From Epithemia pelagica (lineage: Eukaryota; Protista; Bacillariophyta), in assembly GCA_946965045.2 (NCBI GenBank), contig OX337242.1, positions 558,001 through 622,000 of the forward strand: a DNA stretch of 64,000 nucleotides, given 5' to 3'. Of the stretch, positions 45,826-51,474 are shown piece by piece; the stretch's first letter is position 1, and the number at the start of each line of letters is the position of its first letter. Under the pieces are notes generated by a model. It was given only the letters and a program-made list of their open reading frames with translations, was not told where the DNA came from and searched no databases. Position numbers and translations under genes: made by a program.

Positions 45826-47125
45826 ATGAAGCTCTACATGGATCCTAGCTTGCTTCCACCTTCCCGCAATCGCGAAGCCAACTCCACGCATCGTCTTTCA
45901 CGTTTAGACATTCAACGAGCCAGTCAAGATATTAAGCGCTTTGTCGAAGACCGTCTCGAACGCGACTTTCACCTCGTCAAGGTAGGTACTGTCCGCACCG
46001 TATACAACTACGTCTCGTCTAGCTCTGGTTTCTTGTCTCAACCAACAAGACTGTTCTTGATTGACTGTACAGCATGCCACTCCCCTGGCCTTCTTGACCG
46101 GAACAGGTGTTAATGATGATCTGGATGGCACCAAGTCCAAAAGTGCCGTCACCTTTCGTGTGCCCAATCAGTTTATTCCTCGAGGTATTGAGGTACAGGA
46201 CGACGATAACGGCAAGAATCCAGCAACACCCTACCAACTCGACTGTGAAGTCGTCCAATCGCTGGCCAAGTGGAAACGATTCATGCTGGGTCATCTCGAC
46301 TGCCCCGTGAATACAGGTATCTACTGCGATTCGACATCCATTCGCAAGGGTTACAAGGGCGACGTGACGCATTCAGCCATTGCCGACCAGTGGGACTTTG
46401 AATTCGAATTCAAGAACATGAACGGACCCCGCAAGAGCTTTATCAACGTGTCCGAACCTTGTGGAGAATAATCAAGGATGCCGAAGAGTTTATTCTGAAC
46501 AAGTATCCCGACATTCTCTTGGCCAATCATGCCACGGCCTCCTTTCGACTCCCCCGGGACATTACCATTCTCACATCCGAAGAATTTGCACCACAAATAT
46601 CCCAATCTAGACGTCCATGATCGCGAAACGGCAGCCGTCAAGGAATACGGTGCCATTTTCATTCATGGCATGGGCTGGCCCATGGCCGATGGATCGCCCC
46701 CAGAGGAAGTGCGCTCCCCGGGTTATGACGATTGGAATTTGAATGGGGACATACTCGTGTACCATCCACTCACGGAATACCGGCACGAACTTAGTTCCAT
46801 GGGCATTCGAGTGGATAAGGAATCCTTGTTAAAGCAACTGGAACACCGGGGCATGATGCATCAATCCAAACTAGATTTTTTCCAAGCCGTCTTGAAAGAT
46901 CGTGTCCCTCACTCGTACGGTGGTGGTTTGGGCATTTCCCGGCTTCTCATGTTGCTGCTTCGCACCGGGCATATTGGAGAAGTCCAAGTCGGTCTGTGGA
47001 ACGATGAACACTTTCGACAAGCGGCCTCCGCTGGCATGGACATAATTCCCGACCGCATTCTGAACTTTGACACCAAGGACAAGCCCGACATGACAACAGA
47101 GACCAAGGAACATGCAGACCAGTAG
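45826..47125 (+). CDS. asnA: Aspartate-ammonia ligase (asparagine synthetase A); intron 45982-46072; two opposite 1-nt indels at ~46404 and ~46586
   Basis: Motifs DDLDG, EVVQSLAKWKR, DQWDFE, YDDWNLNGDIL, ELSSMGIRVD, GGGLGISRL and HIGEVQ. The segment RIQEHERT…NKYP…ITILTSEE lies in a shifted frame. Confidence 0.9.
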
Positions 47126-48120
47126 CACTTGGAGGTGGGATATAGTGTACGAACAGATATGACACCTTTTGCGACGACAAAACAATCCAAATGTAGAGCG
47201 AAGCAGTCGTTTCGCAAACATTGAGGCCACACCTCAAAGTGACAAATCATCATCGCCGACTGAATATGACGAGGAAGGAATCATATTATTAGACTCCACC
47301 ACCAATCTGTTGACAGCATCCAGCATAGCCATTTCTTGCCGTATTCCGTAACCTCCTCCCTGTTAGGTGAACCAGAACTTGCAACCCAATAGAGATCAAA
47401 CCTTTGCCGTAACAATAACGACAAGTTCGCAGATTCGTTTCCATTACTCTCTGTATGCATCGGTTCATAGATTCGCTTCCCTCAATGCCTTGATGTTTCT
47501 TATGCCTGTATGTATCTTGGCCGTTTAGTCCCTCTTCTCGCTCGAATCCTCGTTGAGACTAAATAATATAGTAGGAAGATCGTCCGTCTAACAGTCACAA
47601 CGTATACAGGGCGGTCTTGCTGTCAAATCATATTGTACAAAGGCGGACAACAATGTATTGTATATATTGGTGACCACGAAGCGTGAAAAAGGCAGCCTGA
47701 CCACCATCATGTTGTTGATTGCCCAACAATTGATTGTGTGACAGAGAAAGTTCCCGCCAATCATGTATATCTTATATCTCGTGGTTTGCTCTTTGTGTGT
47801 GTTCGTGTGGTAGAGATGCTTGACAAGATGCGAAACTAAAGATTATGCGATGCTCTAGAGAGAGATTGGGCGATGGGACCATCGTCCAATGTGAGAGGAT
47901 AGAGGAGTATACCTAGTTACCCAAAGATTGATTCGTGACCCGACTGAAATAGGAATGTAAAAATGGCACGAATCTTCGCGCTCTGCTCACGTTTGGATTT
48001 TGGATATCCACAATCCACACTCCATATTGATCTCCTTTTCATCCAGGTCTATTATCGGGGTACGGATATGGCAATTACAGGTACTTCCTTTCCCGAGTAC
48101 CTACGCTGCTGATTTCCTTT

Positions 48121-49200
48121 ATGGAGCGCAATGAAGACAAAACCTTAGAGGAGGACGCCAGCGCCATTGAATTGTCAGGCCCGATCACCGAAAGAGCCAA
48201 AAAGACCCCACTCTTTGATGCTTTCTTGATTCACACTGGGGCACAAAAATCCTTAGCAGTCGACGCCCTTCACTATGTCTTATCGAAAACTTATGGATTC
48301 CGATGCTTTTTGGACGTGGAAATGAATAACAACGGCGGATCACCTCAACAGCAAATGCTAGAAGCTCTATGGACCAGCCGCTACTTGATCGCCGTCATTT
48401 CTGTGGAATTCTTTGATCGGAAGGATCCAAAAGACGAGCTTTGTAGGGCATTTGATCGCATGAAGTTTCTAAGGGACCGAGAAAATTATGGCTGGCAATC
48501 TCTTTGGGTGATACTGTACAACATATCCGTCTCCGAATATGATCAACATCGTGTCACTCATGATTTGCCCGATCTGGGAAACGAAGTGGTTGTATACGAA
48601 TGGTTAAACCACGGAGCTTCAGGAAAATATCACCGTTGGTCGAACCTGTGCGAGAATCTGGGGCTTTCCTTGGTGGCTCACGATGATAAAGATGGCGCCA
48701 AGGAAAAATGGACAAGATTTACAAAAGACCACGGCGAAGGACTTCTTGACGAAAGCCTTTCAAGCTTGTCCTCATTTTCGTCAAGGTCCAGAACATCGGT
48801 GATTCGGAAGATTCGTGTTCGTGTTCACGTCGCACGTTTCATAAAGGATCCAGAGGGCCGAAAACATTTTTTTGTCAATGTCGTCAACGAATCGCCGAAG
48901 CGCGAACTACAAATATCTCATGTTTATTTTGAGGACAAAGCAAAAGGAATCTTTCTCTCGATTCAACCCAAGGCAAGAAAGCTACCAACGAGATTAAAGC
49001 TTGATGAGTCCTGGGAAACTTGGATCCCTGTTTCCCAAATTGAAGACGCGATGGGAGTGCAGCTGGATCAGAATGAGTCGATGTACAACAAGTTTTTCGT
49101 ACGATTAACAAGTGGAGACGTCTTCGACTCCGAAAGGAACATGAGTGTTCCCCAGCAAGGATCGGTTCCCGGTGGACCAATCGAGGACATTGGGATCTAG
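48121..49200 (+). CDS. TIR-domain protein (bacterial-like TIR_2) with an uncharacterised beta-rich C-terminal domain
   Basis: FDAFLIHTG, FRCFLD, MLEALWTSRYLIAVISVEFF and DPKDEL match the TIR betaA/betaB/betaC pattern and the catalytic Glu position. Intronless, 359 aa. Confidence 0.8.
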   Translation: MERNEDKTLEEDASAIELSGPITERAKKTPLFDAFLIHTGAQKSLAVDALHYVLSKTYGFRCFLDVEMNNNGGSPQQQMLEALWTSRYLIAVISVEFFDRKDPKDELCRAFDRMKFLRDRENYGWQSLWVILYNISVSEYDQHRVTHDLPDLGNEVVVYEWLNHGASGKYHRWSNLCENLGLSLVAHDDKDGAKEKWTRFTKDHGEGLLDESLSSLSSFSSRSRTSVIRKIRVRVHVARFIKDPEGRKHFFVNVVNESPKRELQISHVYFEDKAKGIFLSIQPKARKLPTRLKLDESWETWIPVSQIEDAMGVQLDQNESMYNKFFVRLTSGDVFDSERNMSVPQQGSVPGGPIEDIGI

Positions 49201-50037
49201 GTGGTTATTAGAATTGTAACAAAGTGCCTACACTGCAACAACCTTTGACAGGAATCACATGCGTACGCATAATGTCCTGAAAACAAACTACTGGTCGACC
49301 ATATGGAGGGCTATGCAAGCGGAAGACGCAGAGAGAACTGCACTGCGTTTTCTTCATGATGACGATTGATAATTGAGAGGCGAGAGTCGTTGCACCACGG
49401 CAAGAAAATGGGGAATCGAGCCATAACCTTTAATCTCGGATACCAACAGTCTCCTTCACATGTTTTGCTGCTGGACTGTTTTGGCATGTTACCATGTTGT
49501 GGTCTACGCAGAATCGAACCATGGGTTCAGCGGATAGACTTTTGTCGTTCATAGATAAAAGGAGTAACCATGAGTGACTAATATCAAGGAGTGCTCCTGC
49601 GTGACAACCACAAGATATTAGCCACATCCGGATGCTTTCGCGGAATGTCTGCTGACCGTTTGGCCCCTTGATCTAGTAGTCATTGCTATACAAAAGACGG
49701 CAGACATGCAACATTCAGTGCCTTCTATTAGTGTTATAGTCTCTTTCCATACATACGTTCACAAAAAAGGAGAGATGAACTACATCATGGTCATCTTCCA
49801 ACCCATCAGCACGACCGCAAACATGTGTGTGTTTGTGACACGCGCACGCACCCATCACACCGCAGTGACTGGATTCCCTGTGGTGACTTTGTCGTTTGTC
49901 GTCGTCATTCGGACTCGACAAGACAGGAAGCAGCAACAAACAATACGGATATTCGAACGACACGGCAGTTTCGTTTGGAAGTACGCGAGACGCGTCCAAC
50001 ACCATTGGAACCATCCACACGGGATAGTTCCACCGGT

Positions 50038-51474
50038 TTACATCATTTCTGTTCTAGTGGTCGTTCGTGTGTTTGTCGCATCCGTGGGCGGTGGTTGTTC
50101 TCGTAGCAATCCATAGACTAACTGAGGTTCGTTCCGAACTCGTGCCACCAACTGTGGCAAGGCATGTCGTTCCTGTCGCAACCATCCCCGTCCCGCTTCG
50201 TTCAAGGCCACAACATGTCGAAGTCGTTCGGCACAGGTATGCGTCAAGGGACGGAATGACACGCCTTGTCGTCGTTGCTGCTGTCGTTGTCGTGGACCCG
50301 TCCAGTACGCTGCAGACGCAATGACAATGGAAAGACGAAGCAAACTGGTATTGTCCCGTTGTAACACCTCATACAAGTTCCATCCCATGGAATCCGACAA
50401 GGGGTTGAGATCGAGACTCAATCGTTTCAAACTGGTATTGGTGGCCAAGGCTTGACAAAAGGCATGGCTCCCATCATGCTCTTCTTCGTGGCCGTTTCGT
50501 CCCGACAATTGATTGTGCGAAAGGGAAAGTTCCGTCAAGGCAAAGGAGGACCAAGTATCCGAGTCATGCTTGGAGGAGGATTGCCACAACAAGGGTGTAA
50601 TGGCGTGCCAGTCCGAAATGTGATTCATGGAAAAATCAATCTTGGTCCAAGGACGGTTCGTTTGTTGAATGGCCTGACAGAGGGGACCGACATGAGACAA
50701 GTTACAACGAACCAATCGCAATTCTCTCAAGGAGGGCAATTGTCGAATGAGTTGGACCAGCAATTCCATCGTTTTCGTACTACTAGATAAGTCCAATCCA
50801 AAGAGTTGCAAACTGTGCAATCCTCGACAGTGTGCCAAGGCCTGCAACAATCGTTGCGTAGTGTGGTCGGCCCTGGACCGCTCGTCGTCATTGTCCTGTT
50901 GTTGTTGTTGCTGCTGTTCGCAAAAGGCCAATCGCAATTCCTTTAAGGCCAAGGATGGGTGTGCCAATGCTTGTCCCAGCGACGAGAGCAACACACTTGT
51001 CTCTTGTTGTTGTTGGAACAGAGAGATATGAGTCATGTGCAAGCGTACCAAATTGGGACAGGTTACCAAGGCTTGTGACAAGGCTTGAGCGGACAAGGCA
51101 TCTTGTTCCAATTGCGGACCCAATCCGACCAGGGACAAGGATTGAACGACGGGAGATTCTCGCATGGCTCGAAACAAGCCCAAACATCGCAAACACGAGG
51201 ATGTGGAAGACGCCGTGACACTTTGCACCACATGAAATCGAATCATCCTCTTACTGGGTCCACGTGATTGTGGTTGTTGCAATTGTTGGACCGCTTGATT
51301 GACACGGTCTTGCGTATCCAACCATTCGTCACAGGCTGATGACGAGGAGGAGGACGATGAGTGTGGTGGATGGCATGTCGTCGTCGTCGTCGTCGTGGTT
51401 GGAGAGGGATCCTTGGGCCGACGAAAGGCCAACAAGTCTCGTTGGAGGGCGAAATGACGAGCGGCCATCAACAT
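50038..51474 (-). CDS. RNI-like leucine-rich repeat protein, third family member
   Basis: LKELRLAFC, LHSLQLFG, LRELRLVRC, LTELSLSHN and LKRLSLDLN repeats. The C-terminus ALNEAGRGWL…LVYGLLREQP is typical of this family. Confidence 0.8.
   Translation of the reverse strand: MLMAARHFALQRDLLAFRRPKDPSPTTTTTTTTCHPPHSSSSSSSSACDEWLDTQDRVNQAVQQLQQPQSRGPSKRMIRFHVVQSVTASSTSSCLRCLGLFRAMRESPVVQSLSLVGLGPQLEQDALSAQALSQALVTCPNLVRLHMTHISLFQQQQETSVLLSSLGQALAHPSLALKELRLAFCEQQQQQQQDNDDERSRADHTTQRLLQALAHCRGLHSLQLFGLDLSSSTKTMELLVQLIRQLPSLRELRLVRCNLSHVGPLCQAIQQTNRPWTKIDFSMNHISDWHAITPLLWQSSSKHDSDTWSSFALTELSLSHNQLSGRNGHEEEHDGSHAFCQALATNTSLKRLSLDLNPLSDSMGWNLYEVLQRDNTSLLRLSIVIASAAYWTGPRQRQQQRRQGVSFRPLTHTCAERLRHVVALNEAGRGWLRQERHALPQLVARVRNEPQLVYGLLREQPPPTDATNTRTTTRTEMM

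Follow-up and report, generated by a model that had tools for sequence, protein, structure and literature searches.

DUF4062, a domain of bacterial defense proteins, has been shown experimentally to be a TIR-like NADase acting against phages (bioRxiv 10.64898/2026.05.01.722283), and two more 2026 preprints describe it in the same way (10.64898/2026.09.04.749371 and 10.64898/2026.06.25.731849). In Dictyostelium, the TirBCD protein carries a TIR domain that was obtained by horizontal transfer from bacterial TIR-STING and stands without the regulatory domain (PMC13142454). Here, we describe a gene in a window of 64,000 nucleotides from the diatom Epithemia pelagica (contig OX337242.1, positions 558,001 to 622,000, forward strand; coordinates below are those of this window). 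It is a nuclear gene of a diatom-like alga and encodes a cytosolic protein of two modules, hereafter P0001, in which an N-terminal TIR domain and a C-terminal beta-sandwich domain, hereafter C-dom, are joined by a flexible linker. We propose that P0001 is a TIR effector protein with an acquired C-dom serving as switch or sensor and with an NAD-based immune output, and we give this reading, taken as a whole, a probability of roughly 0.55. That the gene, the two folds, and the C-dom family are real we hold with high confidence.

The original prediction for this window, made by a model from the DNA letters and a list of their open reading frames (ORFs), described an intronless gene with an N-terminal TIR_2-type fold bearing Glu at the catalytic position, a Ser-rich linker, and a separate C-terminal domain of about 130 amino acids. 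Our analysis recovered an uninterrupted ORF of 359 amino acids with the same peptides, and each of these parts could be located within it (Table 1). Residues ~192 to 226, within the Ser-rich linker, are predicted to be disordered, with predicted local distance difference test (pLDDT) values below 50 at residues 192 to 198 and 203 to 226 in the AlphaFold2 (AF2) model.

Table 1. Features of the TIR-C-dom gene in the window
Feature	Position	Strand	Basis
TIR-linker-C-dom ORF (P0001)	48121..49200	+	359 codons plus stop, uninterrupted
Probable unspliced transcript, ~1.5 kb	48056..49558	+	65 nt 5' of ATG, ORF, and 358 nt 3'
TIR domain, aa 31-190	48211..48690	+	Pfam TIR_2, AF2 topology, Foldseek
Glu106 codon, TIR catalytic Glu position	48436..48438	+	Alignment and AF2 model
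Ser-rich disordered linker, aa 191-230	48691..48810	+	AF2 pLDDT
C-dom, aa 231-352, Ig-like beta-sandwich	48811..49176	+	AF2, profile search

The C-terminal domain is well defined as a fold and as a family. An AF2 model built on a 42-sequence alignment gives nine strands and two short helices (pLDDT, 91.4; predicted template modeling score, 0.87), arranged as an immunoglobulin (Ig)-like beta-sandwich, and the domain also exceeds a pLDDT of 90 in the full-length model. Across this alignment, in which mean column identity is 45%, the invariant residues are N, L, and ETW, and some 21 other positions are near-invariant, many of them polar (H, N, E, T, H, R, E, R, S, and N). P0001 keeps all of the invariant and nearly all of the near-invariant positions, retains the motifs RVxVHxAxF, FxNVxN, THVW (here SHVY, a conservative change), RxLPxRL, ESWETWI, VRLSxG, and VPxxGxVPG, and it scores 189 bits (E = 2e-51) against the family profile. 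The last 149 residues of P0001 match no Pfam, NCBIfam, or PADLOC model, even at an E value of 1, and a search of the C-dom profile against PDB sequences gave nothing meaningful (best match, calsequestrin, E = 1.2). Names drawn from structural matches were considered and rejected. The best Foldseek matches among PDB folds, the KirBac cytoplasmic domain and ApaG, lie at background level (E = 0.04), as does the best match among BFVD viral structures (E = 0.12), and the wide VIA fold search reached a Z score of 7.1 at best, with FlaF/FlaG, archaeal pilin, Spo0M, ApaG, and transglutaminase barrels, a generic Ig-like result.

We define this unnamed family by profile A1/A2, with clusters formed at 50% identity. 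An exhaustive profile search returned 541 clusters at E ≤ 1e-3, 426 at E ≤ 1e-10, and 97 at E ≤ 1e-30, and these clusters look almost entirely bacterial or environmental. Seven loci come from bacterial metagenome-assembled genomes (MAGs) of about six phyla (Desulfatiglandales, Ca. Brocadia, Solirubrobacterales, Prolixibacteraceae, Dormibacteraeota, Miltoncostaeaceae, and one uncultured bacterium), and profile scans of contig collections added 47 metagenome loci and one IMG/VR locus. The latter, on viral contig IMGVR_UViG_3300035208_001886, is a stand-alone C-dom gene of 118 amino acids (L010:3930-4286), and C-dom may thus also be carried on phages or prophages. In the Miltoncostaeaceae MAG (GC content, 0.78), the C-dom frame is lost after about 60 residues (L009:7953-9176), and this copy is likely frameshifted or degraded, or else it reflects a sequencing error. 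Neighbors of C-dom in the ESM Atlas are 83 to 100% Bacteria and include a cluster labeled "TIR domain-containing protein" and 130-amino-acid hypothetical proteins, the Atlas models of family members having template modeling scores of 0.68 to 0.71. A word-index search with P0001 returned five proteins, P0001 to P0005 including the query, whose C-terminal regions share 31 invariant columns. P0002 has the architecture of P0001 and is 39% identical to it over 90% of its length (TIR, 47%; linker, 27%; C-dom, 46%). In P0003 and P0004, C-dom follows a DUF4062-like region, and P0005 is a TIR_2-FHA-C-dom protein.

It had also been suggested that the C-terminal domain resembles one that bacteria fuse to TIR-like proteins and that has no name, and the Pfam content of the best 150 of the 541 cluster representatives bears this out: TIR_2 is the commonest partner (38 of 150). 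The other partners are TIR (19), CHAT (3), FHA (3), Pkinase (2), EAD1 (2), EAD7 (1), DUF4062 (2, at 1e-21), Abi_alpha (2), ThsB_TIR (2), and SEFIR (1), with single cases of Metallophos, FGE-sulfatase, GUN4, DUF2321, pentapeptide, and Peptidase_C25. When the earlier word-search matches are added to these representatives, 153 proteins result; 66 of them are extended N-terminally, 27 C-terminally, and 10 at both ends, and the other 50 consist of little more than C-dom. The simple order TIR_2-Cdom is seen in five proteins from metagenomes (40 to 73 bits on TIR_2). Further orders include CHAT-Cdom-FGE_sulfatase (P0143), CHAT-Cdom, SEFIR/TIR-Cdom-GUN4 (P0024), EAD1-Cdom, Pkinase-Cdom, and helix-Cdom-DUF2321. 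Among the 77 short or C-extended forms, about 21 have a strongly hydrophobic, transmembrane (TM)-like helix at the N terminus, directly before C-dom, and others start with an amphipathic helix; in the TM-Cdom-TIR_2 proteins (P0065 and P0086), C-dom and the TIR domain share one side of the membrane, presumably the cytoplasmic one. Family members match PADLOC models through their effector parts (SAVED_TIR, PDC-S66, Ago-TIR, ThsB, bSEFIR, and the PD-T4-6 kinase). We assume that the SAVED_TIR matches also fall on the TIR part, because the diatom C-dom alone matches no PADLOC model.

The DUF4062-like N termini of P0003, P0004, P0006, L013, and L019 score just below the Pfam threshold (E = 2e-4 to 5e-4). 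Since DUF4062 is itself a TIR-like NADase, the two commonest kinds of partner, TIR and DUF4062, are both NAD+-consuming effectors, and DUF4062-C-dom constitutes a second NADase-C-dom architecture. A 232-amino-acid protein of the Prolixibacteraceae MAG (L007:520-1218) has an HNH-like CxxC...H...N...CxxC region before C-dom, an N-terminal region that has no Pfam match.

Taken together, the modules beside the bacterial C-dom comprise TIR, DUF4062, SEFIR, CHAT protease, HNH-like, kinase, and phosphoesterase domains or a single membrane helix, and in some proteins a recognition-type domain (FGE-sulfatase, GUN4, or FHA) lies on its other side. Because C-dom is paired with exchangeable killing modules, and at times with a recognition-type domain opposite to them, we infer that in single-gene defense proteins it is the part that stays constant and acts as switch, sensor, or self-association module; the more specific role of sensor would follow from domain order. 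C-dom could instead be the effector or a targeting module, membrane proximal, ligand binding, or enzymatically toxic, with the TIR domain as a second and independent output. Such a role would suit the roughly one-third of representatives that consist of C-dom alone with a short N-terminal TM or amphipathic helix, the direct fusion of EAD1 and EAD7 to C-dom, where EADs usually carry an effector (a concept taken from PMC7159879), and the approximately 25 near-invariant positions, many polar, which are unusual for a mere Ig-like scaffold. It agrees poorly with the proteins in which C-dom stands in the middle, between effector- and recognition-type domains (CHAT-Cdom-FGE_sulfatase and SEFIR-Cdom-GUN4), and with the finding that C-dom co-occurs with eight or more distinct enzymatic modules, as a regulatory part that stays constant would be expected to do; moreover, the PDB, VIA, and BFVD searches revealed no similarity to a known toxin or enzyme fold. 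We consider an effector role for C-dom quite unlikely.

In the TIR domain, Pfam TIR_2 (PF13676, STIR clan) matches residues 35 to 112 at 29.1 bits against a cutoff of 28, covering profile positions 2 to 77 of 122, and the classical Pfam TIR model scores slightly under its threshold. PADLOC reports a weak PDC-S66 match on the TIR stretch, and NCBIfam reports a partial Retron_TIR match on the same stretch as TIR_2. P0002 scores 34 to 35 bits on TIR_2, and a profile made from bacterial C-dom-fused TIRs matches residues 33 to 114 of P0001; a word-index search with the TIR region alone (residues 20 to 215) returned only the query itself. The full-length AF2 model, built on an alignment of 31 TIR-C-dom proteins, gives residues 31 to 190 a flavodoxin-like fold of five strands and five helices in the order bA-aA-bB-aB-bC-aC-bD-aD-bE-aE (pLDDT, ~60 to 88). 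Foldseek matches this model to RUN1 (E = 2e-5; target-normalized template modeling score [TMt], 0.64 to 0.73) and AbTir (TMt, 0.69), with further matches to MyD88, L7, SNC1, L6, and the SPARTA TIR. Among PDB sequences, the Paracoccus TIR 3h16 (PdTIR) matches best, its FFKKEWPQKEL being aligned with FFDRKDPKDEL. Glu106, of the DPKDEL motif, is the sole invariant TIR column among the 31 proteins, both eukaryote-like ones included. It is predicted to lie at the N-terminal end of helix aC and is aligned with the Glu of WPQKEL in PdTIR and of WCLDEL in RUN1 (two-sequence profile, SRWCLDEL).

Enzymatic (NADase) TIRs usually have an aromatic residue (Trp) four residues before the catalytic Glu. RUN1 and PdTIR have this Trp, whereas the position is occupied by Asp102 in P0001 and by Ser in P0002; in most bacterial C-dom-fused TIRs, it is F, Y, W, or H. 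A TIR domain without this Trp might be a non-enzymatic scaffold or adaptor, which would assemble with other TIR proteins through TIR-TIR contacts, take C-dom as its input, and cleave no NAD+. The Pfam match, marginal and restricted to half of the domain, is in keeping with this, and scaffold TIRs (MyD88 and MAL) are among the fold and sequence matches. Against such a role, Glu106 is retained throughout the 31 proteins, and the bacterial C-dom is also paired with the DUF4062 NADase (10.64898/2026.05.01.722283) and with other enzymatic effectors, which suggests that the partner position is that of an enzymatic output. We therefore regard a pure scaffold as unlikely and favor a catalytic TIR domain.

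To place the diatom gene, we built C-dom trees of 153 rows and, with more care, of 51 rows. The C-doms of P0001 and P0002 fall inside a clade of 39 rows (support, 95/89) whose other members are all bacterial-like or environmental, and the pair lies at the base of a subclade of 29 (94/86). The nearest C-doms, in P0019 and P0023, are 55 to 57% identical to that of P0002 and have non-TIR N termini; their contigs are bacterial-like and high in GC (0.58 to 0.63), and one is densely coded. One named relative is a Corallococcus metallophosphoesterase. Because the diatom C-dom is nested among bacterial-like C-doms, the nearest of which are on bacterial-like contigs, its horizontal acquisition from bacteria is the parsimonious reading and, on this sequence evidence, a probable one. 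The TIR domain behaves differently: pairwise, it reaches only 9 to 11 bits at best against the bacterial C-dom-fused TIRs, and its profile is equally far from bacterial (PdTIR, 22.6 bits; BtpA) and plant (RUN1, 19.9 bits) TIRs. With pairwise similarity this close to zero, we restrict the claim of acquisition to C-dom. The earlier description of the gene as a "horizontally acquired sensor-effector" is thus partly supported: the C-terminal domain nests in bacterial-like sequences, but transfer of the gene as a unit goes beyond this evidence, since the TIR domain is barely similar to the bacterial fused TIRs. The entire gene may have been transferred from a lineage not yet sampled, or the alga may have gained C-dom and fused it to a TIR domain of its own.

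The gene lies on contig ctg1310l (628,498 bp) of ENA assembly ERZ21939226. A second haplotype contig of that assembly, ctg1353l (1.59 Mb), holds a syntenic allele of equal length, P0157, which is identical at 357 of 359 amino acids (changes, E24K and I135M). The alleles differ at 3 of 1,080 nt, too few for a meaningful ratio of nonsynonymous to synonymous substitution rates, while the haplotypes diverge by about 1.7% over a 4.5-kb span of ORF and flanks, more than over the ORF alone. The gene is intact in both haplotypes, and the assembly, with diploid haplotigs of 0.6 and 1.6 Mb, is eukaryote-like. GC content is 0.461 for the ORF and 0.490 at third codon positions, similar to the other long host ORFs of the window; the correlation of relative synonymous codon usage with neighboring ORFs is lowish, at 0.41. 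The stretch was found in four public sequencing runs, all of one study. Two of these are DNA-like, with an even depth of 110 to 145 across the gene and contigs of up to 509 kb. A third, run X4, is RNA-like by its depth pattern: a single 1,531-nt contig with a depth of 98 and no joint spans exactly the transcript interval of Table 1, and depth is 500 to 2,000 in the AsnA-like gene on the upstream side, drops to zero between the genes (47309-48056), is near zero over 49558-49820, and then 55 over the downstream leucine-rich repeat (LRR) gene. This run suggests that the gene is transcribed, and the jointless contig, like the continuous ORF, fits the predicted lack of introns.

These data bear on whether the gene might be a bacterial contaminant, an assembly artifact, or a dead relic, an idea that could draw on its bacterial-like closest C-dom relatives and on the codon usage correlation. 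A contaminant would not be expected inside contigs of 628 kb and 1.59 Mb, with syntenic neighbors in both haplotypes, uniform DNA depth, and host-like GC content at all and at third positions. Nor would a relic be expected to have an ORF that both alleles preserve intact and that diverges less than the span with its flanks, or a relative such as P0002 at 39% identity. Contamination, which had been named as a possible objection to the prediction, and decay to a pseudogene are therefore rejected, and we regard either as exceedingly improbable.

The TIR gene is flanked upstream by an aspartate-ammonia ligase gene of AsnA type and downstream by an LRR gene. The ligase gene (46061-47125, +) is split into two frames (46061-46471 and 46529-47125), and on the other haplotype, it is one ORF of 432 amino acids (L061:1202-2500); the split copy is either a frameshifted allele or an assembly error. 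Between this gene and the TIR gene, a 499-bp stretch (47238-47738) is missing from contigs of three runs, of which two are clearly DNA-like, and appears to be a heterozygous intergenic indel. Downstream and tail to tail with the TIR gene, a gene at 50038-51474 (-) encodes a 478-amino-acid LRR (RNI-like) protein with poly-T, poly-S, and poly-Q tracts and only weak Pfam LRR matches. Several differing loose ends, which all runs show at 50897, 51285, and 51360, suggest that paralogous copies of it exist elsewhere in the genome.

We clustered the neighboring ORFs of about 55 bacterial or metagenomic C-dom loci. No partner gene is common to divergent loci in this set, and synteny is shared only among near-identical contigs. 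The sole recurring neighbor is a phage-type integrase, at five loci (L008, L028, L029/L030, and L039); others are an ISL3 transposase, ParE-like toxins, a PIN protein, DUF4143, and DUF4145. This listing of contexts, which is not a formal test of defense-island enrichment, fits C-dom genes being single-gene modules on mobile or variable islands. The bacterial, defense-linked homologs that the original prediction called for are thus found both by profile search and by neighborhood, in mobile and toxin-rich contexts. On near-identical soil contigs (L048-L057; e.g., L051:4660-7760), the C-dom gene lies between a DUF3466-like gene and a kelch-repeat gene, the latter of 481 amino acids and 27 nt downstream of the C-dom gene. 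The C-dom/kelch arrangement may be a lineage-specific operon, and the kelch and DUF3466 neighbors are limited to one species-level group.

The bacterial contexts also speak to a non-immune role, in which a domesticated gene would act independently of pathogens, for instance in turning over NAD+ or in regulated cell death when nutrients run short or a bloom declines. The diatom locus itself sits comfortably with domestication: no operon partner or defense island is possible in a eukaryote, the neighbors are the AsnA-type ligase and LRR genes, and both domains are evenly conserved between P0001 and P0002, with near-identical alleles and no sign of arms-race diversification. Every recognizable context or fusion of the bacterial C-dom, on the other hand, is of conflict-system type, and we judge a purely domesticated role improbable.

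In the TIR effector reading that we prefer, a trigger, either a component of an invader or a ligand, would cause C-dom to bind or self-associate. This association would cluster the TIR domains and so form a composite active site around Glu106, and the active TIR would consume NAD+ or make an NAD-derived signal. The loss of NAD+ or the signal would then lead to growth arrest or cell death. NADase-based immunity as the function of the TIR-C-dom protein falls somewhat short of even odds. A more specific version is tentative: C-dom could be an NTPase-free switch or sensor of bacterial single-gene immunity that was captured by a diatom lineage and wired to a TIR domain as a cell-autonomous trigger of defense or death. 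The structural corollary of this version, that the 120-amino-acid sandwich replaces the central oligomerization domain of effector-switch-sensor proteins, is equally doubtful.

Several observations weigh against the TIR effector reading or parts of it. As to output, the Pfam TIR_2 match covers only the first ~80 residues of the TIR domain and barely exceeds its threshold, and the Trp preceding the catalytic Glu is replaced. As to C-dom, its fold matches are generic, so that structure offers no hint of function, an enzyme or a ligand-binding effector could likewise account for its many invariant polar residues, and for the EAD1-Cdom proteins, "adaptor plus effector" is an equally good reading. 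As to origin, the C-dom tree is short (124 columns) and for the most part weakly resolved, most C-dom relatives have no assigned taxonomy, P0001 and P0002 are the only eukaryote-like members seen, and the TIR domain is as distant from its bacterial counterparts as described above. Finally, expression is suggested by run X4, whose RNA-like character is read from its depth pattern.

If the reading is right, the analysis defines a sizeable domain family of 541 clusters for which Pfam, NCBIfam, and PADLOC have no model and of which no structure has been solved, and its fusion partners (TIR, DUF4062, SEFIR, CHAT, EAD, and membrane helices) mark C-dom as part of the bacterial immune toolkit. It would likewise add a case of a bacterial immune-type module in a photosynthetic microeukaryote, and the C-dom switch, if real, would be a type of defense or cell death trigger that has not been described in algae. 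The compact TIR-C-dom and TM-C-dom proteins are candidates for single-gene defense that can be tested directly. Little is known about the molecules behind antiviral and antibacterial immunity or programmed cell death in diatoms, and a TIR protein with an E106A mutant makes the question approachable.

We found no paper describing C-dom, and a literature search on TIR, diatoms, and NADase returned nothing relevant. The closest relatives of P0001 are uncharacterized bacterial TIR_2-C-dom proteins of about 260 to 300 amino acids (e.g., P0008, P0032, L018:2328-3152, and L023:551-1375). They share with it the order of TIR and C-dom, the invariant Glu, a C-dom that is 40 to 45% identical, and the same motifs. 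In these proteins, TIR_2 scores 40 to 96 bits and the TIR domain abuts C-dom directly, whereas the algal protein has a longer TIR domain (~160 amino acids; RUN1-like in the fold search) that scores 29 bits, lacks the Trp before Glu, and is barely alignable pairwise with the bacterial fused TIRs, and it has a 35-amino-acid Ser-rich linker.

Among characterized systems, TIR-STING, TIR-SAVED (CBASS), and cNMP-activated TIR (Pycsar-type) proteins offer an analogous logic, a TIR output fused to a compact input domain that switches on the NADase through ligand-driven assembly, with membrane-helix versions of the same input domain in parallel. C-dom differs from them in having no sequence or fold relation to STING, SAVED, or cNMP-binding domains, and the bacterial C-dom neighbors scanned with Pfam include no cyclase or other signal-making partner of CBASS or Pycsar. 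P0001 likewise has no ThsB_TIR (Pfam) or ThsB (PADLOC) match, and no ThsA partner (SIR2 or Macro-SLOG) occurs among the scanned bacterial neighbors, although a few family members match ThsB models via their TIR domain. The links to Thoeris, CBASS, and Pycsar that had been drawn for this gene are thus best taken as analogies, no partner or sensor domain of those systems being present. Plant TNL and animal SARM1 proteins are set apart by their NB-ARC and LRR or ARM and SAM domains; the Pfam hits in P0001 are TIR_2 and TIR only.

Swarozyc, NIR, and Evangelion are comparable in that their domain, DUF4062, is one N-terminal partner of C-dom, at sub-threshold scores in P0003, P0004, P0006, and L019, and is like TIR an NAD+-depleting abortive-infection effector activated by assembly. 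The text of the Swarozyc paper does not mention a C-terminal sandwich domain (10.64898/2026.05.01.722283). Unlike Swarozyc, the diatom protein has a TIR domain in place of DUF4062, and the Swarozyc trigger, the phage portal, is not transferable to C-dom. TirBCD provides a precedent for the recent transfer of an immune TIR-type protein from a bacterium to a microeukaryote and for its tolerance by the host. The paper describing it does not mention diatoms or stramenopiles (PMC13142454). In contrast to TirBCD, it is the regulatory-type domain, C-dom, that is the clearly bacterial-like part of the diatom gene.

The tripartite CHAT-Cdom-FGE_sulfatase and SEFIR-Cdom-GUN4 proteins resemble the effector-STAND NTPase-sensor proteins (NLR-like and Avs; PMC7159879), with which they share effector sets (TIR, CHAT, and EAD adaptors) and sensor sets (FGE-sulfatase, GUN4, and pentapeptide). 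Unlike the STAND systems, C-dom is a 120-amino-acid beta-sandwich that has no NTPase motifs, and the diatom protein has no C-terminal repeat sensor. P0001 is a member of the TIR superfamily but has none of the partner domains that define the Thoeris, CBASS, Pycsar, TNL, or SARM1 architectures, and what is new in it is the putative control domain fused to the candidate TIR effector and its presence in a eukaryote.

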